Assembly: GCA_000708835.1 (NCBI GenBank)
Contig: DF237005.1
Coordinates: forward strand, 202,228 to 266,227
Length of the DNA stretch: 64,000 bases
Source: Klebsormidium nitens
Lineage: Eukaryota > Plantae > Klebsormidiophyceae
Reading direction: 5' to 3'
Part shown: in pieces, positions 6,451 through 57,721 of the stretch
Position numbering within the stretch: the stretch's first letter is position 1
Layout: every line of letters begins with the position of its first letter
The notes under the pieces: generated by a model
What the model was told of the DNA's origin: nothing
Databases searched by the model: none
What the model saw: only the letters and a program-made list of their open reading frames with translations
Made by a program: the position numbers and the translations under genes

Positions 6451-10513
<4,063 letters not shown>

Positions 10514-43006: not shown

Positions 43007-44063
43007 ACAGGCGAGTCGCCGGGCGGAGTCGTGGTTCCCGAAGATGGGGGGGTGGTAGAAACGGTGTTTGAGGGGGGGTGTCCGCGGGGGGAGCTTTTAG
43101 GGCGTCTCTGCTTTCAGCGAAGGGATAGGTTGCAGAAACGTAATCTAAAAGGGGGGTAATTCGAGGGGAAAGACCTGTTTAGAAAGGGGAGTTGGTGGGA
43201 GGAGGGATCCGAGCGGTGTGCTGACGTCGCGATTCTATCTAAAGAGCAGATGGTGTCTTTGGATGTGCGGCGAAGCCTAGGTTCCGCGCCGAAAGGCGCG
43301 GATTGCGGAAGCCCTAGCTGCCGTGGAAAGCGGTACACGGCACGCGCATATGGTCAAAACTAGGTTTGGAAAAGATGGTGGGTACAGCGGGTTTTGGTTC
43401 CTTGCAAAATGCAGGCGGTAGATCTAGAAGCAGACGGCATAATACATATACCAGGGAAAGCTTGAAGCGACTTGCTTTTGGGCACCTCTGGAGCCCAACA
43501 AAACGTTCCTGACGCGTACGATACGTCGGGTCTGCGAAGACCCGACAACTTGGAGCTCGGCGCTTAACTTCATGCGGTACAGACTAGACTGATACTAGTT
43601 TCTTTCAGCATAGTCTGAATGATCATGAAAGTCATGAAAAGCCTAGCCCTGCTCAGTAGCCGCGAGCATGATAGACACATATCGGACATTGACTTGATTT
43701 TGGAAGCGTGTCCCATCGACCTGCCCCATGGATCGTTCAAGCTTGCGTGATGCAGAGACGTTGACCTGCTTTATCTGTGAAAAGTACTGCAGCAATCAAG
43801 GCTCCTCCAGCGGAACGTAGGCACGTAGAACCACCCTAACACGGACGGAGCCAGCTGCAAGCGAATAAGAACTACACTATACACCCCACCTATATCGTGA
43901 CCCGGGTCGGTCAGCATTAATGAAATATTTCTTTGACAGCCTTCTCAATCTTGCGTCGAGAGTCTAAACTCAACATCAGAGTCCATTCTTATTGAGAATG
44001 AGGCCATTGGGTTCGAAAAAGCTGCTACAGGGAAGGAAGGAAGAGCCTGTATGAGACGGTAGC

Positions 44064-44106
44064 GTGGACTCAAACCATTCTGTCTTGTGGACTCAAACCA
44101 TTCTGT
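44064..44106. repeat. Exact 20-bp direct repeat, two copies
   Basis: gtggactcaaaccattctgt at 44064-44083 and 44087-44106. Confidence 0.8.
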
Positions 44107-44639
44107 ATTCAAACGATAGATGGTAAATGTTCGAAGACGTATCCTGTTTTCACGGCAATGTCCTTCAAAACATCACATGCTCTCAGGCTGTACTTCAAAA
44201 AGTTTCAACAGAGCACATATTATTGCTATATCAAGTGGATACCAGAGTGCACGCGTTACCGCCCGCATATTCAGGAGCTGGCACGCCCATCACACTGGCT
44301 TGCTTGGATTCCAGCGAAAGCAATACGGTACTGTGGACTTTCTGCCGCTTTTACGGGCAGCCCGGCCCGGTTGGTGGCTCTGGGTACGCGGCCGGCCGCG
44401 CCGCCTACGTTGCGGCGCAGCACTCGCGGCCGCTTGTTCTGGCAGGGGTTTGGAAAGGGTTTAGGTCAAACACGGTTTCTAATAACGGAAACCAGTTCTC
44501 ATTTGCAGGTCCGCTTTTACTATTAGCAGCATTGCCAGCAATGCACAGCTACTGCATGTGGGGCGCTAGAACTCAAAAGCTGCACATAGGAGCTCACAAC
44601 AAGAAGGCAGCTCGCTAGATAAGTATCAGAGGGGTCACG

Positions 44640-47600
44640 ATGCCGGCAGCTAGACAGCTGATGAGAGAGCCTTCCTCCAGCGCTTTGTCCTGTACTGTCC
44701 AGGGACTAGCACCTTTTCAACAAGCAGCAAATGATGGAGTGTGCAGAGGGATCCGGATGTCTTGTGAGAGTTTGCAGTTCATAAGATTAATTGAACAGCA
44801 GGCAGTACAGCTAACATTTTCTCATAACATTACTTTTTCCCAAGTTCCTCTGCTATCTCAATCAAAGAAGCAACGTAAAAACCGATGCAACCGCAAGGTA
44901 TCTTGCGCGATGCCGCCAACAGGCCATCAAAAAGGTATCAACGATGATTGCTGGCAGGGCAGGGCTGAAAGATCCTGTAGCAACCAGGGTGGTAAAGCGC
45001 GAAAGCGCATGATAAGCGCTCCAGTCTTAGGGCGACTACAGGAAAATGCAGAGTTCAGCCGGCTTGCAAATGGGGCGAAGGAAAAGAAGGAAAGCAAGCC
45101 GAGAGAGACAGGAGTCGAGATTGATCTGGATGAGTTGATGGGACAAGGTGGGTTGAGATGCTGGCAATTACTTTCTATACCACCACTATCATCGCAGAAA
45201 TGAGTCGCTTTCGTAGAAGTTTCTCTAGTTAAAACACTCGGCAACAGGTTTCCTGAGCCTAAGTTTCTTGCTTGTGTGTCCTGGTGTATCTGCACTGACC
45301 GTCTAACGTCAGGGTATATATAATCTAAAAGGCTTGTGTATGAAGTCGGAGAGCAGGCTCGCAATAGACTGTGATCTCTTGCACGACAGCTCTGCACATC
45401 TGAGACTGTTTTCTGATTCTCAACTAGAGTTAGCAAATGATGCAGATTACATGACCAGATCTTTCGTAGAATAAGTCGTTTTCGGAACAGCTCTTTCTGC
45501 TGGTCCATATGCCACTTACACATATGGCCTTCTCAAGGGGGCGAGGTATGGACGTATGGGCGCACGGAGTCCCCAGTCGGACAAGAATCTTTTTATCACA
45601 CCAATGGTTTTACACATAGCTCCAGTGTCCGTTGTTTCCTGTCAACCTTACTGAGATACTCATGAAACGCACATTTCTGGACAACAGTAATTAACGTTAT
45701 CTAGTTTTGTTGTTTCAGATCTCGATCGGGGCACAATCGGGTCTGGTTGGCTCCCTCCCCCTCCAGAGATAGCCCGACCACGTGCGCAGTTCAACGCAGG
45801 GACAATGGCTTACCTGGGTGATGGGGTTTACCAGGTGGGTCCGGTTCCCTTTGGATTCTAATCATTCGTCTGATGAGCTTTCTATACGCTGGGCAACGAG
45901 CAGAGACTCGCATCCTCACTACCCCCTCAGGATTCCTGAGAAAGTAGTTCACCCCTCAGGATTCCTCAGAAACTGGCTCACAACATTGTGGGAGCTGGCC
46001 CAACACAGAGTTCACTGCCTTCTGCACACTCCATGCTGAGTGTCACTTATCGCCAAGCCCCAAGGACAAGAAAGATGGTTCACGCTTTCTGCGCCTACCA
46101 CAGAAGTGTTAGAGAAGTGGCCCATCCACTGAAAGCCCCGTTCTTTATTGGTGACTTCTTTCCCCCTCCCGAAACGGTGGTTAACGATCTTCACCCGAGC
46201 AACAGAAAAAGCTCACGAAAATCACGTCCTCCCCTCCCCCTTGCAGATGTATGCCAAGCGGCACTTCTTGCTCCCCCCCAAGACGGTCAACGCGTTGAAC
46301 GAGCGCGTCCTGGGGCTGGTCCGCTGCGAGACGCAAGCGGCCATGCTGCGCAAGCTGTGCAACGGCGCGTTTCTGACAGAGGAGGAGCGGTGAGAGCTCT
46401 CCCTTCTTTCAATCTCTACTTCTTTCCAACATTGTGTTGGACTTGTGGCCCTACTTCTGGTTGCGCATCCCAATATCTGCTCGATTTTGATGTCAGAAGC
46501 TCTTCTGTGTAATTTCGTGTCATGAACCTCCTACTCTTCGGAGTGCAAACTTGGTAGGTTTTCTCGAACATTGGTTCGAAAAGACGACTGGGTCGGCTCG
46601 GAAATTCCAGAGCTCACAGACCTAAGTGGCATGTATACACTACACCGAGAAGGGGGCACAGGGTCGGAGTTCTGTCTATCTATTCTGCTCTGTGCTGGCT
46701 CAGTGGCTCACAGACGTCAGACGTGCGCGCTGATACGACTTGCTGCTTCAACCCTTTCCTTGAAATGCTTCTCGTAGCCCTCAATCTCTTACTTCCTCTG
46801 CGCTCTTCAACCAGTGACTGGCTCAAATCGGCAGGAGGATCTCGAGTCCTGGTGACGGCCCCCGATCTTGTCACCGAATCGTCGTACATTCGGCGCAGAC
46901 CGATTTTCGAGTCATAAGACTGGGCATACCTCTCATCATTCTAATCGTAAACGATCAGATCTATGAACACTTTTCTCGCTGCAGGGCAATTGTACGATGG
47001 GGCAAAAATGCCGCTCAGGACTCGAGCAGAAAGGCGATACGCAGGGCTGGGGGGAAGGCCTACGGAGAAGCGACGGCTCTTGAAACCCTGGTAGGTCAAC
47101 TTGTTGGATACTCAGGGTTACGCATCTTTTTCTCTTGAAAAGGAAGCATATAGTAAAGCAAGCCAAATCGGGGAACTAAGCCTTTTCTCTCCCTTTTAAC
47201 CTCAAGTAGCTGAAGGCGCATATGATGACATGATTGTCAAATTGTTTCTTAGGTAACTTTGTTAGCGTGAGCCCTTTTCTAGCTGCAAAAGAAGCTGCGG
47301 CATTGTCTACTCAGATGTCCCTCCTCCAATTGTAACTTTCAGCACGGAATGAACTGACGACTTGGCAGTCGAGCCCCACCGCTGACCAGTCGCCCTTGCT
47401 CTCCTCCCCAGATTGGGTTCCTGTACCTAACAGACCCGTCCCGCCTAGACGCCTTGATGACGCACATTGGGTTCAGCTTCAACAGCTCCACGATTGCGAA
47501 AGAGGAACTGGAGGGGATCCCCACAGACGTGCCCAACGAAAACAGCCCAGGGGAACGTTTGGAGGCGGTTGGAGAGTCCAGGGAAGCGCCCGGACTAGAC

Positions 47601-50106
47601 GATTCGGACCGACTTAACGGGGTGAACGACGTTAAAGTTAAAGACGGGGTTGAAGATGGGGTTAAAGCGGTCTCGCTCCTTTTAGAAGCAATGCAAAACA
47701 TGGACAATGAGCTCGGTGCTTCTCACCGAGGGACCTCCTATGGGGAGGCGGGCCACCGCGAGGCGCCCGGGTCAGCTCCTCGGGGAAGCTCTCAAACTGC
47801 GGAGGGTTTTGCGAAAATGGAGAGCGCTTCCTTCGCTGACGCCATCGACAGACTCCCTTCAGCAGCCGCTGTCGGGAAGACAGCGAACACAACCGAAGTG
47901 AACGGGACTGTGCTTCGTAGGGGTTTAGCAGTCCCGGAAAGGGAACCGGGGGAAGAACGGGGATCGTGGGAAGGACTGCGGACCCACGTGTCAGAATGTG
48001 AGATTCGCGGAAGCAGCCCCAGTCTCGGAAAAGCAGAGAGCTCCGGAAGGAGACCCGGTGGATCCAGTGGTGGGTCGTTGTCTGGCGACGTGGCACTTTC
48101 ACAAGCGAACATGGTGCCTCCTGAACCGGAGGGATCAGCCGGGGCGTTAACCGGGGCGTCAACCGGGGCGTCAACCGGGCGGTCGGGCAGTCTGGAGCAG
48201 TCCGAGACCGGCGCCCGGGCATTGCCGCCGGAGTGCCCCCCGGAAGTGAAGGAGGTCTGGGAGAAGACGAAGCGGCTCCTTTGGCAAAAGTGAGGGGAAA
48301 CTTTCCGGCTCCGAGGGTCTAAAGTCGGCTCAAACCCACATTTCTTTCTTGTGTAGCTCTCTTTTTGCGCCTTTGACAAGGCGCTCTTAAGGGCTAAGCC
48401 GCTCTGAATGATTAATCGGAATTTCCGCGATAGCTCAACGATTACAATACTGCGCCTACGCGATTGCTCGCGATGGTCTATCTGAAACTCGCCCGACTCA
48501 GAAGTTTGTTAGAGCGGCCTGTAAAATAACTGGGTCGTTTGCTAGACCTCTACAGAGGGAGTAAAGCTCAGGACAGTCGATCCGACGTCGTCTTCCCGTT
48601 TGTAATGCCTTGAATGCCCTTGGATGCAGAACCCCACGAGGCAAAGCGAGTCCTTGAATTTCAAAGCACCAAACCTTCGGATTCCAAAAGTACTTGAGTG
48701 CCATCAGAAGCGAATCTTGCCGCTCTAGGCATGACGGAAAGGCGCACCGTTGGCACTGGTACCACTTAAGGCCGCCTCTTTAGCAGCTATTAAGAAGGGC
48801 TTTCGCAGGTCTCTGCTTCGAGAACGTCACTAGGGCGCTTAGCTCTGGCCGCATTCCCTTCATAATGCCTATATTCTAAGGACGTCTTTCGAATCAGGAC
48901 CCTAGCTTCAAATATGCCACAGCTCTCTGCCGTTAAGGTTATGTCTCTTCAATTTAGCAATAGTAAGCTCTAGCAATAGTAAGCCCTACACTAACACTAA
49001 AAACCTAACTCACAAAATCACCCGCTCCGCACCCGAACCCACCCTAACCCCTAAACTAACCCTACCCGCCCCAGGCTGGTGACTCGTGAGCTTACTATTG
49101 CTGAAGCTTACTATTGCAAAATTGAAGATTCTTTTTATGGTTTGTCGTTGAGCGGATCCCGACAGTAACTTCAGCGAATCACGGCAGATCAATAGACTCC
49201 CGCGAGTACGTCTGCGAGTACGTCAGGAAGTTCGAGCGACAGCCAGCTTTACTAGCTCGCCCCGAAGGTGCGTCCGCCAGACCTTTGAGCTACCAACGGC
49301 GACAACCAGACTGGGGTTGCTCCGAGCGCGCCCTGACCGCAGCCCGTATTTCTAAGCTAGATTCTTAAAACCCTCAAACGCTAAAGCCTTGAAAACCAAT
49401 CTCCAGGTACCAATTGCGACAGAAGCTGTCGCCGGAGGATCGGGACTTCGTCATGCAGGAGATCCTGACGTATCACCCGAACGCGACAGCGAAGATCGGG
49501 TGCGGCGTCGAGGCCATCACGGTAAGCGCTGAATCGTCAAGTATTCTTTGATCCATGAATGGATCATTCTCCGAGGTTAGTGAAGCAGGCTTGAAGATTT
49601 GAAGATTGTTTCTAGCTCAGGGTTCATTAGGATCAACTTCTCCACAGCCCCAAGGAGGCTGCTGACCCGGAAACCAAATTCTTTGCCGAGACATCCGTTC
49701 CACTCGTGACTTTCCGAAAGCATGGCTTGCCTATTCCTGGCTGATCGACTCTGATTCTACTGCCTTTCCGCCCTAAACCACCCACTTCTATGATACTTCA
49801 TATCCAACTGGCCTTCCAGATTCACTTGACGCGTTAGCCTTCTCGCGCCGATTGACGCAGGCTCAAATCTTCATGCTCTTGTTGACGCACCCCTTTGACG
49901 ACTTCTGTGTGAACCGACTTAAGCTATAAATTCACCAGATTCCCTTAAACCAAATTGCCCCGAATCACCCCTGTACCGTTTGTTCCCAGGTGGACTTTTC
50001 CATGCAGTCCCGCGCCAACCGGTGCTTCCACGTCATCCGCAACGACGGTTCCCAGGAGGACTTTTCGTACCTCAAGTGCCTACGGGTGCGCCGAGGGATC
50101 CTGTAG
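44640..50106 (+). CDS. Mini-ribonuclease III (RNC3/RNC4-like) fused via a ~250-aa disordered linker to a C-terminal DCL/DUF3223 domain; start uncertain, confident from 45042
   Basis: Exons 45042-45147, 45719-45834, 46247-46389, 46985-47090, 47412-48289, 49407-49521 and 49990-50106 are all in phase. Mini-III: RAQFNAGTMAYLGDGVYQMYAKRHFLLPP, VRCETQA, IVRWGKNA, YGEATALETLIGFLYLTD. DCL: KRLLWQKYQLRQKLSPED, LTYHPNATAKIGCGVEAITV, RCFHVIRNDGSQEDFSYLKC. Confidence 0.9.
48946..49128. mobile_element. MITE/foldback-like element: 39-bp terminal inverted repeats around a C/A-rich telomere-like spacer
   Basis: The left arm 48946-48984 (tcttcaatttagcaatagtaagctctagcaatagtaagc) matches the reverse complement of 49090-49128 at 36/39 positions. 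The spacer is rich in cctaac/ccctaa. No clear TSD was seen. Confidence 0.55.
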
Positions 50107-52197
50107 GACGCGCCGGAAGCCGCGCTGGCTTCGTTTTTGCGGAAGCGGGGAAATTGCAGGCACGCTAAGTTACATTTTGATAGGGTCCAGCAGGATGCGG
50201 TTTGAATTGACACTACTTGATAGCCGCGTGCCCAGGTCAAAATTGTCAAGGACCAACAGGTGTCTACAGAGTTGGGCGTATCTTGCAAACGGGAATTGCA
50301 AGCAGATCATGATGAAAGATTTCTTAACATAAACGTGGAGACAGAAGAGTCATAGCAGGCTTCCAAACTTCCGGGCCTTTATATGTCGGAGCTCATGCAG
50401 ACGTGGGTGCGTATCTGAGTCTACTAATTAGCTTCAGAGCTTTCCGGAGTACCGAAGTCAAGAGTCCAGGAACTTGAAAGCGAATGAACACTTTTCTGAG
50501 TCCGTGCGGGACGCGCACGGGCCTAAGCCACTAGCAGCCTCCGTTGCCAGCTTACTTGACCATGAATAACCTAACCTGGCCCGTTAGACCCATCAAATAT
50601 AACGTGCTTGACGTGTTCGCGTCGGGCGCGGCCAGTCAGTCATATCTTGGGCATATGCATCATCCCGAGTACGAGGCGCACGCGATCGTGGCATGACCAA
50701 GCAGTGTGTCTTTTGCAAACTTCACTGAATGCTCGGCGGCAGCGCCGCACAAGTGCGATCCTTGGCTTGCAAACCCAACGCTGTTTGAGCTGACCAGCAT
50801 CATTGGCTGCATATGCACTATTCCAAACAAACTCAAGACTACATGCTGGGTTTCGGCATGAGCTGCTGCACAATCCCATGCACATGATCACTGTACCTTA
50901 CCTGGCGGCATATGGCCTGGCCGTCAATCCATCATAAGCAATCGATTCTGCAGTGCAAACCCGAAGAGATTCGAATTTGGTATTATCGTTCACAGTCAAT
51001 AAGTCAATCATGCAAGATGAGGCATGGCAATCATAAAGCTCAAACATTGAGATCTGAGCCTAGATATCTGCTCACAACCAAACTACAGGTTTTAATCAAT
51101 CAAGCAAACTGATTACACCTGTCTAAGTGTTGTCACACTGGAACGTGAATTTCGCAAAACGAGTGCAGCCGCTCTCGTCCGTTCTTGTTGGCGCCACTGT
51201 TTGCTAGGTGCCGCTTGTTGGCTGCGTCACACAGCTTGCGAAAGAGGGAGAAGTCCTCTTTTCCTTTCGGTGTGATTGAAGCTGTCTGTTACTGGGAAGT
51301 TGCCAAGTGCAAATCTGAGCTTTGGGTAACGTTCTCCTCACTCCGGCTGCTGAAGGAACCTATTGTCAGTCTATTTCAGTCGTTGAGTGACTACAAAGAA
51401 GCTTCAAAGTGGACTTAGAACGTTCTTACTGTTACAATATTGTAGGCGAAGACCATCTCATTGGGCGGAAGTAATCCAGATGCTATAGCCTATCCGAGCA
51501 AGATTACAAGAGTTAGCAGGACTATACCAAGAGTTGAAGTGAATTGAACGGTTCATGACCGTCCGACGAATTCTGATTAAGCAGTACCGTCAGTCCGTGC
51601 GGACATCTATGTTCCCTTTTTGTTCCGGCTTGGTCTTCGGATGAAGAAAGAGCGGAAGATTCCGTCTCTGTAGATCGGACGTCAACCTAAAGTTTGCAGC
51701 AAGATCACCGGCACGGTCTCAGGCAGCCGCACGGAATTTAGTATTGGTGGCAATATCGGGTTGAAGGTGGGACCTGCCCCAGGCTTATCAAGAGAAGATT
51801 CCCTAACAAGTAACCAGGTGCGACTCAAGTTTCGAAGATACCCTCCTCGAATCCCGCCATGTGGCGCGCCAGCACGCAGACGCCAAATCTGTGCCCGCAT
51901 ATCGCTGCTCAAAAGGCGCGTGATCATTAACTAAAGCTGATATATTGTCACGCGTCAAGACAAGCTTGGGCTTCGAGAAGACCTAGCATGACAGGAGTGG
52001 TCTCTCTGGGCAGTGAACCTGTCTGCTCGGCAGGCTGTCAAGCATATAGTAGGGCTCCCAGCACTGCTTTTGTGCGTCAGTCGCAAACGCCTCCGACGCA
52101 AGAAATAATCTCCACTCGTCCAAGCTTAGCTGCATTCGCTTCGCGCTCTGGCGGCACCCGCGCATCAGCACGGCTGAGTTGACCCACTGTTCCGATC

Positions 52198-55100
52198 ATG
52201 GTGTCACTTTCCACGGCTCTGTGCGCGATCCTGCTTCTTTTGGGTTTGGGTTTGCTGGCAGTCCATGCTGCTGCGCATTGCCCCGCATTCTTCAATCCCT
52301 GCTACGACGCAGCTGGCACCCGCGAGTTTTGCTGCAAGAGCGCCCAGAACGGCCTGGCTGCGCAGACCTACGAGTGCTGCCAGTCTCAATGCGTGCCTGT
52401 CGGCGCTTGCGTCTGTGATGCCTCCGGCAGGCGAGCGGGTTTGACAAGAGATTCTGAAGTATCTTTTGTCAATCTGTTCGATCTTGCAAAGTTGGCTTTG
52501 TTCAGAATGCAAGAGCTTCTCGAGCTTTTGGTTGAGCATCTGGATCTGTGTTTGTGACTCTCTGTTTTTTCTGCTTCGAACCAGCAGAGTTGGCTTTGTT
52601 CAGATTGTGGGCTCTCTTTGAAACTTGCAAAGGGGTGGTGGTTGTCTCAGACGCTTGAGATATACTTCAACTTACTAACATGTAGAAGCTTGGGAGGATT
52701 CCTTGTCTTGGTGTTGGATGCTTTTTCGTGATTCAAGTTTCGAATCTGATCGTCTCATTACTGCTGAAGCCGAGGGGGGTTGACAGCTGTCATCTGAGAA
52801 TCCGATCCATGTAGACTGCTGGCCGGAAGCTGTTTTTTGGAAAAAAGTAGAAAGCACAAGACGTTTTGGCTTGATGCAAATCCTCTAATAGGGAGAGTGG
52901 TTTCCTCCTCTCATTTTGCGGTTAAGAATTAGTGTCCACTTATGGTCTTACAAGTCTGAATGAGCTTTCAATTCATGGCTTCTTTGCAAGCACTTTTGGT
53001 GAACCCGTCGGACCCATGGTTTCCATTTGAATTGAATCTCCCCTTGTCGTGTCTTCTTTCAGTTCACTTCCTATATTCTCCACCTGCAAATCTTGAATCC
53101 CAGCCGCAGTACAATCTCATCGTTATGAACAACAGCCACCCCGCTAGTGCTCCAAGTCGACCAGAGTCTGGGCCAAACTCCATCACCAGCCATGCTCAAT
53201 CATTTTGTATCGTAAAACTTTCATTACTATCATACCATACAAGTCATATCTCTGCTGTTCACCCCCCCTCGTTTACCGCTGCAGCTGCTCGAGTTCGTGC
53301 CCCCAAGCGTACGTGGCTGGCCGGTACTTCGACCGCATTTTCACCATCATCTTCGAGAACACCGACTACGCGGCCGCGATCGCGGACCCCTACTTCGTCA
53401 GCCTCACGCGGCGCGGCGACGGGCGCCTCCTGACCAACTACCACGGCTGCACGCACCCCTCCCTCGTGAGTCGCCCAGAAGAACACGTGTCGAAGTCCCG
53501 AGATTTTTGACTTCAATCTTTCGCCAAAGTCGAGATCGTTCCCGAACGTCAGCAGAATGTCAAACTAGCACTGGAATTTTGCAGTGCGCTACAGAAAGGT
53601 GTTCAGTCGACTGACTCAAACCCAAGGCGATGCACTCCTTCTGAGAGGACGAATTCACTGATTGGATCCCACTTCGTTCCGACCTTGATTCTTACCATCC
53701 TTTTCTTTCCGTCAACCGCTCCTCTCACTCGAGCCTCTTCACATTTTCAGAACATCAAAGTCCACAATGTGCCTTCGTTCTGACACCCCGGACGCCTTGT
53801 CTTTCTGGCAGCCCAACTACTTGTGCCAGTCCTCGGGAACCTTCTACGGCCACACCAGCGATGCAGTGCTCGCAATTAACGGAACGAGCGTCGTTGACCT
53901 GCTGGAACCCGCCGGCATCTCCTGGAAGGCCTACATGGAGTGAGTATCAGTTTCTTGTTATGTCTTTCCTTTATGCCAAGTTGTAAACAGACAGAGATCG
54001 ACAAACTGCCTGAGATTAATGGTGGGGCACGGGTGCGGAGCAACTCCTTCCCCTCCTCATTTTGAATACCGTAAGCTTTCCCCCCGGATAGTCAGTTCCT
54101 TTAAGTTTCCCCCAAAATGGTAACTAAGCTTTTGAACCGTTCCCTTAAAACTGCTGATTCCGTGCACTTCTTTCCTCTTTCAGGGCCTTCAACGGCAATT
54201 GCGACCTTACTCCGTTTACGCCGGCCGACGGGAATGGTTACGCCAGGTGGGTTACGCCATGTCCCACTTTAGTCATCGTTTTTAAACCCTACGGATCCGT
54301 CAGCGGCTTCTTTTTCCTGATCGCTCTCACAAATCGTGCGTTTCTCCTCAATTTTCCCATCTCTCATCGCACTTTCGTCGACGTTCGTATGGATGTTTCC
54401 GCTCTTCACTTTCGTCTTCTTCTGTCACCTCCTTGGGAGTTCCGGTCCTCGCGACAATGTTAACAGATCGTTCTGCCCTTCTCCAACAGTCGTGCCATTT
54501 ACGAATACTCAAGTTCGCTTAATGCTTGCGTTCGCAATCGACGTCGCGCGTCCTGACCGTTCAGTTTCCGCCGTTCCGCCTGACCGTTCCGTTTCCGCCG
54601 TTCCGCCCGCCAGGAAGCACGACCCCTTCCTCAATATCGCCAACATCATCAACAACCCCGCGCGCTGCGCCAAGGTCGTTCCGGCGGCGCAACTGGACGC
54701 GGATATTTCCGCCGGAACCGTCCCCCAGTACGCCTACTACGTGCCTACTCAGGTCAGATTCCGCCCGTTTCAAGATTAGCGTCTCGGGGCTCAAGTACCT
54801 TTGGGTTTCACTCTTCCGTGCTTCTTCCGTTGGTCTGCTACCAGTGATGATGGAGCCCCCCGCGTCTTTGCAGCGGAAATTGGAACGCGGGTGTCGCTTG
54901 TTCCGCAACGTCATCGCGGTTGTGTGCTTCTGAAGGTACAAAAGGGCCCCGAATTCAGGCGATTAGTTCCGGACGGAAAGAACAGTTCTACTTGATTCCC
55001 AGTCACGAACCAACCCAATCAGTCTCAGACTCTAGAAGTTGTGGTTGAGTTCTTGGCGGATTTCCACTTTCTTTCGGAGCCTGTTTGAGTTTGACTCAAC

Positions 55101-56320
55101 CTCGCCGGGAGACAAGATTTCCGTGCTGAATCCGAATCTGTTCTCTCCGCTTTCCAGATAAACGACGCCAACAACATCCCGCAGAGAAGCACGGATCGAC
55201 GAAATCTCGCGCTGTTTTTCATTCTCCGTCTCTGCACTTGCCAGATTCATAATCTTCTTTTCTTTCGAAATCAACGACGCCCACAACAGCAACACGAGTT
55301 TCGCGGCGGGCTACCTGAAGGGGTTTCTGGAGCCGAAGCTGGCCGACCTCAACTTCTACGACGCGCGGACGCTCGTCGTCATCACCTTCGACGAGAACGA
55401 CTTCGTCGAGCCCACCAACAGGGTGAGCGCGCGCAATGTTCTTCGACGATAAAGTCGTAAGATACTTCGACCGGAATGTACCAATTTGAGGAGTCGCTTA
55501 AGTCGCACGCCTTTCGGACTCTGCCTTCTTTGGACTTCGAGGAGTCTCACGGTTTCGCTGTTGATGACGTCGCCTGTTCTGCTTTGCTTGCGCATCTTCC
55601 TTGGACTCGCTCACCGAGTAATCTGTCACACATCCAGATCAGCGGACACGGGAGTGCAAAACCGCGCTGTTCGAAATCGACCTTACGAGAATGTTCTTTC
55701 GAAATCGCTCTGCCAAACGCCTGTTTTGCTGTTGCAAAACTTCTGCCATGGCAAGCCGCGCGCGCTTTGACTCCATTCCTCGCGCCCGTCGATCTGTTCT
55801 GACATTTTCTCGTCCGACGAAGGCGCCCTCCAATCTAGGGCAATGAGCTGTTTAAAAGCTGCATCAACGGCCATAAACATATCGTAGGTTGATATATGGA
55901 CTCTATCTGCAGGTGTACACGGTTCCTTGAACGAAAAACCCCACGAAAGCCGGGTCAATCCACCGGGCAAAGACAAGTAAACCTAACCCACTCATTGACC
56001 CGCTCCGCACTCATACCAATCCTAACCCTTAGGCTCATCCCACCCGTCCCCCGGGCTTGACCTGATAGCTTATTTCAATAAAGAATCAAAACTATTGTCC
56101 ATTGCAGGTGTACACGGTTCTGCTGGGCAAGTTTCTGAACGCCGACGGGCAGGCGAGCAACGACAGCAGCTGCTACAACCACGCCGCAGAGCTCAAGACG
56201 GTTGAGGAGAACTGGGGGCTCGGAAACTTGGGGACTGCTGACGTGGCGGCTAAGTCGTTCTTTTCGGGCGTCAACCAGAACAACGCCTGGCCCACCGTTG
56301 TCTGTGCAAAGGCTTTGTGA
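52198..56320 (+). CDS. Secreted phosphoesterase-family (PF04185, fungal acid phosphatase-like) protein with an N-terminal Cys-rich module
   Basis: Exons 52198-52430 (GC donor), 53285-53465, 53812-53939, 54184-54246, 54614-54752 (or 54727), 55270 (or 55245)-55422 and 56108-56320. Signal peptide MVSLSTALCAILLLLGLGLLAVHA; motifs FDRIFTIIFENTDY, THPSLPNYL, SWKAYME, RKHDPF, INDAHN, VVITFDE, YNHAAELKTVEENWGLGNLG. Confidence 0.88.
54552..54605. repeat. 27-bp tandem repeat, two copies, in the branch/polypyrimidine region before a phosphoesterase exon
   Basis: cctgaccgttc(a/c)gtttccgccgttccg occurs twice immediately upstream of the acceptor at 54613. Confidence 0.8.
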
Positions 56321-57721
56321 AGATATTGTCTAAAGAGCTCAGTGAAAGAGCCGAATGAGTCAAAAGAGCGTGAAAATGCTTGCACCTTTTGAGGTCCCCG
56401 TAAGCTGAGCGATAGAGGGTTGAGTCACAGTCCAAGGTCAAATGCTGTCGTCGTCCGCGTTTACTCGTCAATCAGTCGTGATGATACTGAATTGTTTGTT
56501 TTTAGAGGCGTCACAAAGTGTTAACGTGTCCAAGTCGACGAAGCTCTTACGAAGCACACTATCAAAAGGGCCTGTTCTCTATGCTTGTAAGAGAATCGTA
56601 GAATCATCGCCAAGATCCCAAGACGCCCTTGGATGGATATATATCTAGGTCCAGATTTTCGCAAGAATCTGAGAGCAAGCACGTCAAACAAGTGACTGAG
56701 AGCATGAAGCTCGTTCAGACAGCAAACAAGTCCGTGCAGTGTTCGATTTTCGCCGTTACGTACACTATCCAAGACTTGCGCAGGACCGTTTCGTACTGAC
56801 GTAGCGTCCTGAGCCTGAAGAATGACTCGGGCTTCTGCCTAGACTGTTAATCCAAACCCCCGGCCCCTGGATGATTCTTCATGACAGCATAGTGTTCACT
56901 GCCTAAAGTGGCTCGATGAGCATAAAGTTGCTTCAGGTCGATCCTATATGCATGTGCGCTCGACTAGGTCATGCAGCAATTGAAAACCATCCAGTGCAAT
57001 CGGAAGGCATGCCCAGCCCACAAAATTGCCAAGGTTTTCCTGCCCCTCATGCATCTGGCGGGGTTGCGCTTGCCACAGAATATTCGTGTCAAGTGGCATG
57101 ATGTGGAATGCCTAGAGTTCTGCCAGCTGCAGTGGACTGATGCGGACGCAGAAGTTTTACATATCGTCAGGTACAAGATTGCAATCGAAACAAGATTTGG
57201 TGCAAGACTCGATCTGCGAGTGAATCCCTTTATCGAACGAGCTATGATTTGCAAGAGCAGAACCTTCAGAGAGTACGTTCTACAGATTCATAATTGTATT
57301 GTAACCATGGCATTCTTAATTAAGCAGTCAAGAACAGATTTTTATCAGCAAGGATATGCAGTCAGTTTGAGTCCGGCTAATCTTTGTACCTGGGCAGTCC
57401 TTCTACTCTACCTCAACCAATATTCTCAATCTAATCCTCAAGAGCTGGCATGGAACGAATCTTGTCTTTTGTGCAGTCAGTTATCCTACAATACAATCAA
57501 GCAATAAGGCAGTCCTAGCAGTTGCAGTAGCAGTCTCTTCCAACAGTCGTCAACAGTACGCACAGCCTAGCAAGCAATATCCAACTCAACGATCAAAATC
57601 GTGCTGATTATGCTACCCGGTTTTCGTGTCTCTTGTTCCGCACCCAGCTCACACCTTCCCCTCGAATTTCAAACGCCGGTCTGTTTCATGGGGGTAACTC
57701 AACCCCTGTTCGGGGCCCCCC

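Follow-up and report, generated by a model that had tools for sequence, protein, structure and literature searches.

RESULTS

Gene structure and transcripts

The 64,000-nucleotide stretch of Klebsormidium nitens DNA analyzed here (the window) carries, on its plus strand at 44640-50106, the gene KFL_000560370, whose seven exons, all with GT-AG borders, form one open frame for a protein of 660 aa (Table 1). From N- to C-terminus this protein comprises a presequence, a Mini-RNase III domain, an acidic linker of ~220 aa and a DeCL/DUF3223 domain. KFL_000560370 is a single nuclear gene giving one mRNA and one protein. An in-frame stop lies just 5' of the start codon at 44640, and the frame closes at codon 661 (TAG, 50104-50106); the start at 45042 given in the first-pass annotation was wrong, as it falls within exon 1. 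RNA joints set the exon 2 acceptor at 45719 and rule out a shorter exon 2 of 45800-45834, a difference of 27 codons that brings the protein to 660 aa. Public entries for the fused protein already exist (GAQ80548.1; UniProt A0A1Y1HXG0), under no other names than "hypothetical" or "RNase III domain-containing". The GAQ80548.1 record is N-terminally short, beginning at M124 (45009), and is identical to our gene model from M124 on. Rfam gave no match in 44000-51000.

Table 1. Features of the KFL_000560370 locus, in positions of the window
Feature	Coordinates	Strand	Content and evidence
5' leader	44535..44639 (start approximate)	+	RNA contigs reach 52-65 nt upstream of 44600
Short upstream ORF in 5' leader	ATG 44541, stop 44616-44618	+	ATG listing
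Exon 1	44640..45147	+	Start codon, N-terminal presequence (aa 1-169)
Exon 2	45719..45834	+	WLPPPP..RPRA motif, first Mini-III helix, catalytic Asp204 (GAT 45820-45822); joint 45147->45719 in all four runs
Exon 3	46247..46389	+	Central Mini-III helices; Pfam Ribonuclease_3 on exon piece, E 1e-3; RNA joints
Exon 4	46985..47090	+	VRWGKNA loop, catalytic Glu289 (GAA 47082-47084); RNA joints
Exon 5	47412..48289 (878 nt)	+	Last Mini-III helix (to ~aa 312), linker (~aa 321-540), pre-DeCL segment and putative first DeCL helix (aa 541-584)
Intron 5	48290..49406 (1117 nt)	+	GTGAG donor; spliced out in all four runs
MITE-like insert in intron 5	48946..49128	.	39-nt terminal inverted repeats, 92% complementary, around a degenerate CCCTAA-like core
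Exon 6	49407..49521	+	DeCL/DUF3223, YHP..KIGCG part; Pfam DUF3223 E 3.9e-9, profile positions 7-44; RNA joints
Exon 7	49990..50106	+	DeCL/DUF3223, RCF..DG..DFSY.KC part; Pfam DUF3223 E 2.2e-9, profile positions 52-75; joint 49521->49990
3' untranslated region	50107..50576 (end approximate)	+	RNA contigs go ~350-380 nt past 50200

The joint that connects exon 5 to the DeCL exons (48289->49407) and every other joint were found in spliced RNA contigs from runs X1, X9, X13 and X15, which represent four studies, and in X9, X13 and X15 single contigs of 2521-2563 nt span all seven exons. Exon 5 ends in WQK, and codon 584 (AAG) is divided by the joint between AA and G, which, with the contigs of the four studies, bears out the phase-2 splice proposed in the first-pass annotation. 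Its further claim, that this is one gene with one mRNA and not two neighbors merged by mistake, is upheld by the full-length contigs, which carry the same joint. Retention of intron 5 leads to an immediate in-frame stop after WQK (a TGA inside the GTGAG donor) and a Mini-III-only product. A low-depth contig over 48262-48800 occurs in run X1 only, and X1 is the run with the largest share of the window's words, intron sequence included. The DCL exons lack a usable ATG, and the frame leading into exon 6 is closed 17 nt upstream of it by a stop at 49390; together these exclude a separate DCL reading frame.

Intron 5 also holds a MITE-like insert, whose CCCTAA-like motif occurs 4 times against 0 expected. 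A peak of RNA depth with unrelated loose ends lies over this insert in all runs, so copies of it are expressed elsewhere. A known small RNA was considered for the peak and rejected, as Rfam had no match and the MITE-like repeat was found instead.

Mini-RNase III domain

Pfam places two domains in GAQ80548.1 above their curated cut-offs, the pair that the first-pass annotation had expected. One of these is PF00636 (Ribonuclease_3), which scores 70.1 bits (cut-off 27, E 2.9e-19) over profile positions 3-101 of 102; PF11523 (DUF3223) is the other, and with E up to 1 no dsRNA-binding domain (dsrm) was found beside them. The catalytic Asp (D204, in AYLGD) and Glu (E289, in ALETL), reported as intact from the first reading, align with the positions mutated in the inactive Bacillus subtilis Mini-III structures 6TNN (D to N) and 4OUN (E to Q), which are D23 and E106 of that enzyme. 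All significant solved matches of RNase III type were Mini-III or Mini-III-like (1U61, 4OUN, 6TNN and 2GSL; E 1e-13 to 1e-14 for the solved Mini-III proteins), and no canonical RNase III was among the solved structures matched at E up to 0.01. By its sequence, then, the domain belongs to the Mini-III type, which has the RNase III catalytic domain but no dsRBD, and is predicted to be active. NCBIfam gave no match. Searches of single short exons against the PDB with phmmer returned spurious repeat-protein matches only (TAL effectors, Sel1) and were discarded.

Linker and DeCL domain

The linker (~aa 321-540) is variable, acidic and rich in Gly, Ser, Ala and Glu; the acidic Gly/Ser character first noted for it is thus confirmed, at a length of about 220 aa. 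The identity profile shows that its final ~45 residues before the DeCL domain are conserved.

The C-terminal domain matches nearly the whole of PF11523, scoring 85.7 bits (cut-off 21, E 3.2e-24) over profile positions 4-75 of 75, and has the family motifs YHP..KIG.G and RCF..DG..DFSY.KC. Its matches among solved structures were the DeCL domain of NRPE1 (E 2.5e-15) and the bacterial DUF3223 protein 2K0M (E 1e-9); NRPE1 as top match is biased by the lack of a solved plastid DCL structure. An Atlas model of residues 440-536 of GAQ80548.1 matches the plant DCL cluster at a TM of 0.89. From this evidence the domain is assigned to the DeCL/DUF3223 family, and not, within it, to plastid DCL as against DOMINO1 or the NRPE1 tail. 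Single-sequence AlphaFold models were of low confidence (pLDDT 43 for the whole protein and 51 for the DeCL part), and a Foldseek search of the PDB with the DeCL model was uninformative; we draw no conclusion from any of these.

Exon 5 had been described as beginning with the last Mini-III helix and ending with the first DCL helix. Its size, the helix at its start and its end at the joint stand, whereas the helix at its end does not come from Pfam, whose model begins 3 residues before the exon end, and instead rests on the NRPE1 alignment, which extends into this helix, and on the Atlas model comparison. Only the last ~20 residues of the exon would belong to the DeCL fold.

Presequence, ortholog and selection

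A syntenic ortholog in a second species (L001) has the same seven exons with an intron 5 of only 289 nt, which leaves no room for a promoter and first exon; the fusion is thus conserved in frame in that species. Against L001, dN/dS is 0.02 for the Mini-III domain, 0.17 for DeCL and 0.74 for the linker, at a dS of ~0.5, and exon 3 has 98% amino acid identity. The linker is nearly neutral yet has no stops, the 292 codons of exon 5 lie in one open frame, and the four linker indels relative to L001 are all multiples of 3. Maintenance of the frame over ~250 weakly constrained codons at this divergence, with in-frame indels only, shows selection for translation through to DeCL.

The alignment to L001 starts exactly at the ATG at 44640, upstream DNA being unalignable, and the frame of exon 1 is open in both species without indels. 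Residues 1-100 are fast-evolving and basic (13 K+R against 4 D+E), with 15 Ser/Thr, a composition consistent with a transit peptide, while residues 101-169 are conserved. Conserved basic clusters occur in residues 70-165, and those in residues 101-169 could equally be nuclear signals. An Atlas search with the N-terminal 169 aa gave no match.

Occurrence of the fusion

A whole-protein word search was swamped by the low-complexity linker. Domain-restricted searches returned this protein and one stand-alone Mini-III (P0004), from another high-GC organism, whose transcript has no DeCL; among all sequences returned, this protein alone combines PF00636 with PF11523. The Atlas clusters of plant Mini-III and of DCL are all single-domain, and those nearest to the Mini-III part contain RNase III family proteins from plants and green algae, similar in size to RNC3/4. 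No relatives appeared in two metagenome scans and one scan of bacterial and archaeal genomes, and no literature was found that names Mini-III together with DUF3223. The first-pass suggestion that the fusion is undescribed is supported as to its rarity and needs qualifying in that the fused protein is already public, if uncharacterized. As the fusion has been found in two close species only, it may be a lineage accident.

DISCUSSION

The nuclease part of this protein resembles B. subtilis MrnC (4OUN/6TNN) and Arabidopsis chloroplast RNC3/RNC4 in its single catalytic domain without a dsRBD, its Asp and Glu and its helix order, and it shares the plant-type WLPPPP..RPRA lead-in with the stand-alone P0004. 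Known Mini-III proteins, however, are single-domain proteins of ~130-340 aa, whereas the Klebsormidium protein has a 170-aa N-terminal extension and ~350 extra C-terminal residues of linker and DeCL. There is also a likeness to class 1 bacterial RNase III: if DeCL binds RNA, which a preprint reports for the DUF3223 domain of DOMINO1 (10.64898/2026.01.19.700320), then here too the nuclease would have an RNA-binding module on its C-terminal side. In class 1 enzymes, however, the dsRBD is a few residues away, while here DeCL follows a Mini-III-type catalytic domain after ~220 aa of linker.

The C-terminal part shares a full DUF3223 domain and the motifs with DCL and the wider family (DOMINO1, the NRPD1/NRPE1 tails, alveolate La and bacterial 2K0M), and its predicted fold in the Atlas model is like that of the plant DCL cluster. 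The closest parallel in layout is NRPE1, the largest subunit of Pol V, in which an enzyme core is followed by an evolutionarily labile disordered region and a terminal DeCL (PMC11194755). NRPE1 differs in having an RNA polymerase core instead of a nuclease, a nuclear location, AGO hooks in its linker and an RNase that is recruited, not fused. The DeCL domain of NRPE1 binds the exonuclease RRP6L1 (10.1101/111831) and so provides a precedent for coupling of DeCL to an RNase.

In land plants, Mini-RNase III (RNC3/4, PMC8708148) and DCL are two separate chloroplast proteins. RNC3/4 mature the 5' end of 23S and the 3' end of 4.5S in chloroplasts, and B. subtilis Mini-III requires a ribosomal context (L3, 50S) (PMC8708148). 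Since the work cited as Bellaoui et al. 2003, DCL has been known to be essential both to embryo development and to the processing of ribosomal RNA in chloroplasts. Separation of 23S from 4.5S fails in dcl mutants, and a direct role of DCL in this processing has been called unclear (PMC2532728); the literature found states no molecular mechanism for DCL. In streptophytes other than embryophytes, annotation makes the 4.5S region an integral part of the 23S gene (PMC4007539), and in Klebsormidium it lies at the 3' end of rrl (PMC4877394); the step that separates 23S from 4.5S, and by which the dcl phenotype is defined, may therefore be absent from this alga. A unique loss of rrn4.5 and rrn5 has been reported for the Klebsormidium plastid genome (PMC4007539). 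We rejected a link of the fusion to this loss, since Lemieux et al. 2016 found a divergent 5S gene and a 4.5S-like region at the 3' end of rrl (PMC4877394).

The reading that we favor, by no wide measure of confidence, is that one gene encodes one protein with a presequence, an active Mini-III, a disordered linker and a DeCL domain, which works as a plastid pre-23S enzyme with a tethered docking module. The protein would be imported into the plastid, dimerize through its RNase III domain and, like Mini-III of B. subtilis and RNC3/4 of Arabidopsis, cut the dsRNA stem of the 5' and 3' flanks of pre-23S on nascent 50S particles. What Mini-III lacks would come from the tethered DeCL, either as a module that binds RNA or the pre-ribosome or as a platform linking the cut to further trimming, and through this tether the nuclease would stay at its substrate. 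The land-plant counterpart of this partnership, RNC3/4 with DCL, would be non-covalent. Plastid rRNA maturation with DeCL as an RNA- or ribosome-docking module is plausible by analogy; the functional link between the two domains is suggested by a Rosetta-stone argument, and cleavage of the long linker in the imported protein could leave two free proteins.

It is also possible, with a lower but still appreciable likelihood, that the fusion is real and has little mechanistic meaning: a lineage-specific merger of neighboring genes by which one targeting peptide imports both halves, the disordered linker being cut or the halves acting independently. An almost neutral, Gly/Ser/Ala/Glu-rich linker, the restriction to two related species, a stand-alone Mini-III without DeCL and the single-domain Atlas clusters of plant Mini-III and DCL would all fit such a merger. 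However, the frame maintained through the weakly constrained codons indicates selection for reading through to DeCL, and the last part of the linker before DeCL is conserved; even after a simple merger, moreover, co-import would imply a shared compartment and co-expression. That the two halves belong to separate genes, and that the joined form is an artefact of assembly or annotation or a rare read-through chimera, is highly improbable. The Mini-III-only product of a kept intron 5 and the low-depth contig over it would fit, but that contig is confined to the run richest in the window's words, whereas the GT..AG joint occurs in all four runs and on full-length contigs, the DCL exons by themselves lack a start codon and an N-terminus and the short L001 intron is too small for a promoter and first exon.

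Action outside the plastid, in the nucleus or nucleolus or in the mitochondrion, by a DeCL-bearing RNA-processing enzyme whose logic is related to that of DOMINO1 or of the NRPE1 tail, seems unlikely to us. The Pol V subunit is the top solved match of DeCL and mirrors the layout of the fusion, the presequence has conserved basic clusters, and roles in the processing of rRNA in the nucleus, chloroplast and mitochondrion have been proposed for DUF3223 proteins (PMC7928011). However, the NRPE1 match carries the bias described above, eukaryotic Mini-III has so far been described only from chloroplasts (RNC3/4, PMC8708148), the nearest Atlas clusters consist of RNC3/4-sized RNase III family proteins from plants and green algae and the first 100 residues, fast-evolving, basic and acid-poor, are like targeting peptides.

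A broader and more tentative proposal, which we would not yet back, is that DeCL is the working partner of plastid Mini-III throughout streptophytes, with free DCL binding RNC3/4 or their pre-50S substrate and positioning the nuclease. Such a partnership would account for the failure of dcl mutants in 23S/4.5S maturation. In wider terms, DeCL would serve as the module by which RNA-holding machines are coupled to ribonucleases, as in NRPE1 with RRP6L1 and Mini-III with DeCL.

In summary, DeCL here ends a predicted endoribonuclease, whereas in the proteins described so far it accompanies RNA polymerase IV/V or a La motif or stands without a partner; a nuclease is thus a fourth context for this domain. 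That land plants make both parts separately while Klebsormidium fuses them is a testable clue to joint work. An expressed and selectively maintained Mini-III-DeCL fusion turns a vague link into concrete questions: whether DeCL binds the pre-23S stem or the 50S particle, whether it stimulates Mini-III and whether RNC3/4 and DCL of Arabidopsis interact.

Results

Three-frame translation of 44600-50400 on the + strand gave Mini-III-like and DCL-like pieces, which were joined at GT-AG sites into one open frame of 1983 nt encoding 660 aa. The 878-nt exon proposed in the first-pass annotation is exon 5 of this final model, with exactly the same borders, and the 48289/49407 joint that follows it splits codon 584 (Lys) as AA/G.

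Features of the fusion gene and regions of its protein, the latter from an identity profile against the ortholog in 20-residue steps
Feature	Position	Strand	Basis or remark
Exon 1	44640-45147	+	translation and RNA contigs
Exon 2	45719-45834	+	start at 45719 set by RNA
Exon 3	46247-46389	+	translation and RNA contigs
Exon 4	46985-47090	+	translation and RNA contigs
Exon 5	47412-48289	+	translation and RNA contigs
Exon 6	49407-49521	+	translation and RNA contigs
Exon 7	49990-50106	+	translation and RNA contigs
Stop codon TAG	50104-50106	+	end of exon 7
Variable presequence	residues 1-100		identity profile
Conserved extension	residues 101-180		identity profile
Almost invariant nuclease	residues 181-320		identity profile
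Variable linker	residues 321-540		identity profile
Conserved block	residues 541-660		identity profile; begins ~25 residues ahead of first DeCL helix

The window is partly present in 20 public runs from 7 studies, and in 11 of these its share (0.34-0.41) is consistent with the window's exon fraction. Contigs of four runs from four studies (X1, X9, X13 and X15) were compared with 44600-50200. Their sample type is recorded only as 'RNA?', but the presence of spliced RNA follows from their contig totals of ~30-40 Mb and from the precise loss of all six introns. All six joints, including the predicted 48289 to 49407, were present with GT..AG ends in each of the four runs, and in X9, X13 and X15 all seven exons, a ~60-nt leader and a ~370-nt trailer were assembled into one contig per run (2521-2563 nt). 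Low-depth contigs on parts of introns (e.g., 48262-48800) were confined to X1, the run richest in intron sequence, which fits unspliced precursor or traces of DNA. A minor DCL-only transcript is improbable: although assembled contigs carry no information on transcript start sites, an in-frame stop lies at 49390, 17 nt 5' of exon 6, with no ATG there ahead of the DeCL domain.

The donor of intron 5, AAG/TGAGG (48288-48293; L001, the orthologous locus described below, 6832-6837), places an in-frame TGA in both species, so that retention of this intron would yield Mini-III and linker without DeCL; the start of the intron was covered by a low-depth contig in X1 only. The 5' leader includes a 25-codon upstream ORF (44541-44618), close to the point at which the RNA contigs begin; the position of this ORF is not conserved in L001, as far as compared.

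A phmmer search of proteins with exon 5 gave three matches: the deposited fusion protein P0001 (537 aa, 100% identical to the query), P0002 (278 aa, 52% identical) and, weakly, a 1051-aa protein that is unrelated and rich in repeats. P0001 (GAQ80548.1, KFL_000560370, UniProt A0A1Y1HXG0) is a Klebsormidium nitens entry named 'hypothetical protein' or 'RNase III domain-containing protein', and is identical to our model from Met124 to the C-terminal end. As the first-pass annotation had expected, Pfam placed both Ribonuclease_3 (residues 76-176, E 2.9e-19) and DUF3223 (residues 458-530, E 3.2e-24) on P0001, each far over its curated cut-off; it found no dsRBD.

Among solved structures the nuclease part matched only Mini-III proteins, namely 1U61 (E 2.8e-14), Bacillus subtilis Mini-III 4OUN (E 1.2e-13) and 6TNN (E 1.8e-13). 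Where the 6TNN chain carries Asn and the 4OUN chain Gln at a mutated catalytic position, the algal protein retains Asp (D204, in AYLGD) and Glu (E289, in ALETL); the catalytic pair is intact, as suspected from the sequence. The C-terminal part matched the DeCL domain of the Pol V subunit NRPE1 (8HIM, E 2.5e-15), Pol IV NRPD1 (E 4.8e-10) and the bacterial DUF3223 structure 2K0M (E 1.1e-9). The Pfam DUF3223 profile extends just 3 residues into exon 5. Since the NRPE1 alignment starts within exon 5, at VKEVWEKTKRLLWQK, and an Atlas model of P0001 residues 440-536 resembled a plant 'DCL protein' cluster (TM 0.89), this exon probably carries the last part of the Mini-III domain together with the first part of DeCL. 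An Atlas structure search with residues 442-537 also returned three phage (Uroviricota) clusters of 209-246 aa without Pfam families and with a DeCL-like fold (TM 0.62-0.72 by query), a hint that the fold may also occur in viruses.

P0002 was called as an ORF on L001, a genomic contig of 19 kb from run SRR23617307, where a DUF3223 ORF follows ~780 nt 3' on the same strand. By tblastn and manual joining, the ortholog there was resolved into seven exons that match those of K. nitens and have GT-AG borders at equivalent positions; its intron 5 is only 289 nt long. L001 is the orthologous locus, because the flanking genes are collinear with the window, and it comes from a different species, because dS is ~0.5 and the introns are unalignable. 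Between the two species, dN/dS (Nei-Gojobori) was 0.02 for Mini-III (98% amino acid identity), 0.17 for DeCL (82%), 0.30 for the N-terminal 170 aa (54%) and 0.74 for the linker (48%). The linker differs by four indels (18, 9, 9 and 36 nt), each a multiple of three, and contains no stop codon in either species. That ~250 nearly neutral codons stay in frame argues that reading on into DeCL is what selection keeps.

The deposited record GAQ80548.1 starts at Met124 (45009). Alignment with L001 at the nucleotide level starts precisely at ATG 44640, the preceding 200 nt being unalignable; an in-frame stop lies directly 5' of that position in both species, and exon 1, 169 codons long, aligns gap-free. 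These features indicate that ATG 44640 is the real start. GAQ80548.1 probably lacks 123 N-terminal residues (44640-45008), including the likely targeting peptide. Third-position bias is absent for residues 1-100 and present for residues 121-160; the former may be a fast-evolving targeting peptide. At the other end, the stop codon TAG is GAG in the ortholog, whose frame is 27 codons longer (L001 7760-7843), and K. nitens sequence past the TAG still resembles this extension (APEAA), suggesting either that one species recently gained a stop or that the other lost one.

A 183-nt MITE-like element (48946-49128) occupies part of intron 5; its terminal inverted repeats are 39 nt long and enclose a degenerate CCCTAA-like core. 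There is no room for this element in the 289 nt of the L001 intron. Copies are transcribed elsewhere, because RNA contigs with unrelated flanks accumulate on the element in all four runs. The collinear flanks are ~7.2 kb apart in K. nitens (50140-57310) versus 1.1 kb in L001 (7796-8892); the window therefore has ~6 kb of extra DNA 3' of the gene, which may be an insertion or, alternatively, an additional gene.

P0001 was the only protein with both Pfam families that word-indexed searches recovered from among 5.8 billion proteins, the queries being the complete sequence, its nuclease part and its DeCL part. They also returned P0004, a stand-alone Mini-III (337 aa, 55% identical) whose 1.8-kb transcript is complete and resembles DeCL in none of its frames. 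The nearest Atlas clusters were single-domain, being either RNase III proteins of plants or green algae (176-260 aa) or DCL proteins, and in large Atlas clusters DUF3223 was partnered only with RNA polymerase and La. Scans of metagenomes and prokaryote genomes for relatives gave no matches. Fusions in poorly sampled algae would escape length windows, exact-word seeds and clusters of at least 50 members, and a fair statement is that the fusion is rare, thus far present in two Klebsormidium-type species, rather than unique. Literature searches found neither Mini-III together with DUF3223 nor 'defective chloroplasts and leaves' together with RNase III; the ten best-ranked of 24 papers with two of the three terms mini-ribonuclease III, intron recycling and DCL did not mention DCL, and Klebsormidium and DUF3223 occurred together only in the context of Pol IV/V.

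Discussion

Our results show one gene with one mRNA, encoding a nuclease and a DeCL domain that are both intact and that selection keeps in one frame. The architecture is new, its component families are both known, and it has stood unremarked in public databases; as far as seen, it is confined to one algal lineage. The fusion itself was correctly recognized in the first-pass annotation and is well supported; its reading as a plastid rRNA maturation enzyme is reasonable but unproven.

In chloroplasts, the Mini-III enzymes RNC3/4 carry out the maturation of 23S at its 5' end and of 4.5S at its 3' end; in B. subtilis, L3 stimulates Mini-III, which works on the assembled 50S (PMC8708148). The 4.5S rRNA represents a 3' end of 23S that has become detached (PMC4086613), and 23S/4.5S separation is defective in DCL, DAL and RNR1 mutants, the direct role of these genes being unclear (PMC2532728). 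DUF3223 is found in DCL proteins, Pol IV/V, alveolate La and bacteria (PMC7928011), and RNA binding has been reported for that of DOMINO1 (2026 preprint 10.64898/2026.01.19.700320). We envisage that the fusion protein would be imported into the plastid, dimerize via its RNase III domain and cut the pre-23S terminal stem. DeCL, on its long flexible acidic tether, might be the RNA- or pre-ribosome-binding module that Mini-III otherwise lacks or, alternatively, a coupling platform absent from Mini-III alone.

The main rival explanations are that the fusion is a merger that says little about function, its product possibly being cut after import, and that the protein is located outside the plastid. 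A tie to the rrn4.5/rrn5 loss reported for the Klebsormidium plastid genome (PMC4007539) was dropped, because the absence of these genes later proved to be an error of annotation (PMC4877394). The 4.5S region is annotated within the 23S gene in non-embryophyte streptophytes (PMC4007539, PMC4877394); therefore, the step affected in dcl mutants may not exist in the alga, which weakens a literal transfer of the land-plant phenotype.

The layout of the fusion, an enzyme followed by a labile disordered region and DeCL, repeats that of NRPE1 (PMC11194755), whose own DeCL recruits an RNase, the 3'-5' exonuclease RRP6L1 being bound by this subdomain (10.1101/111831). By this analogy, a general role of DeCL as an RNase-coupling module is attractive. 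The fusion offers plastid RNA biologists a direct hypothesis on how DCL works.
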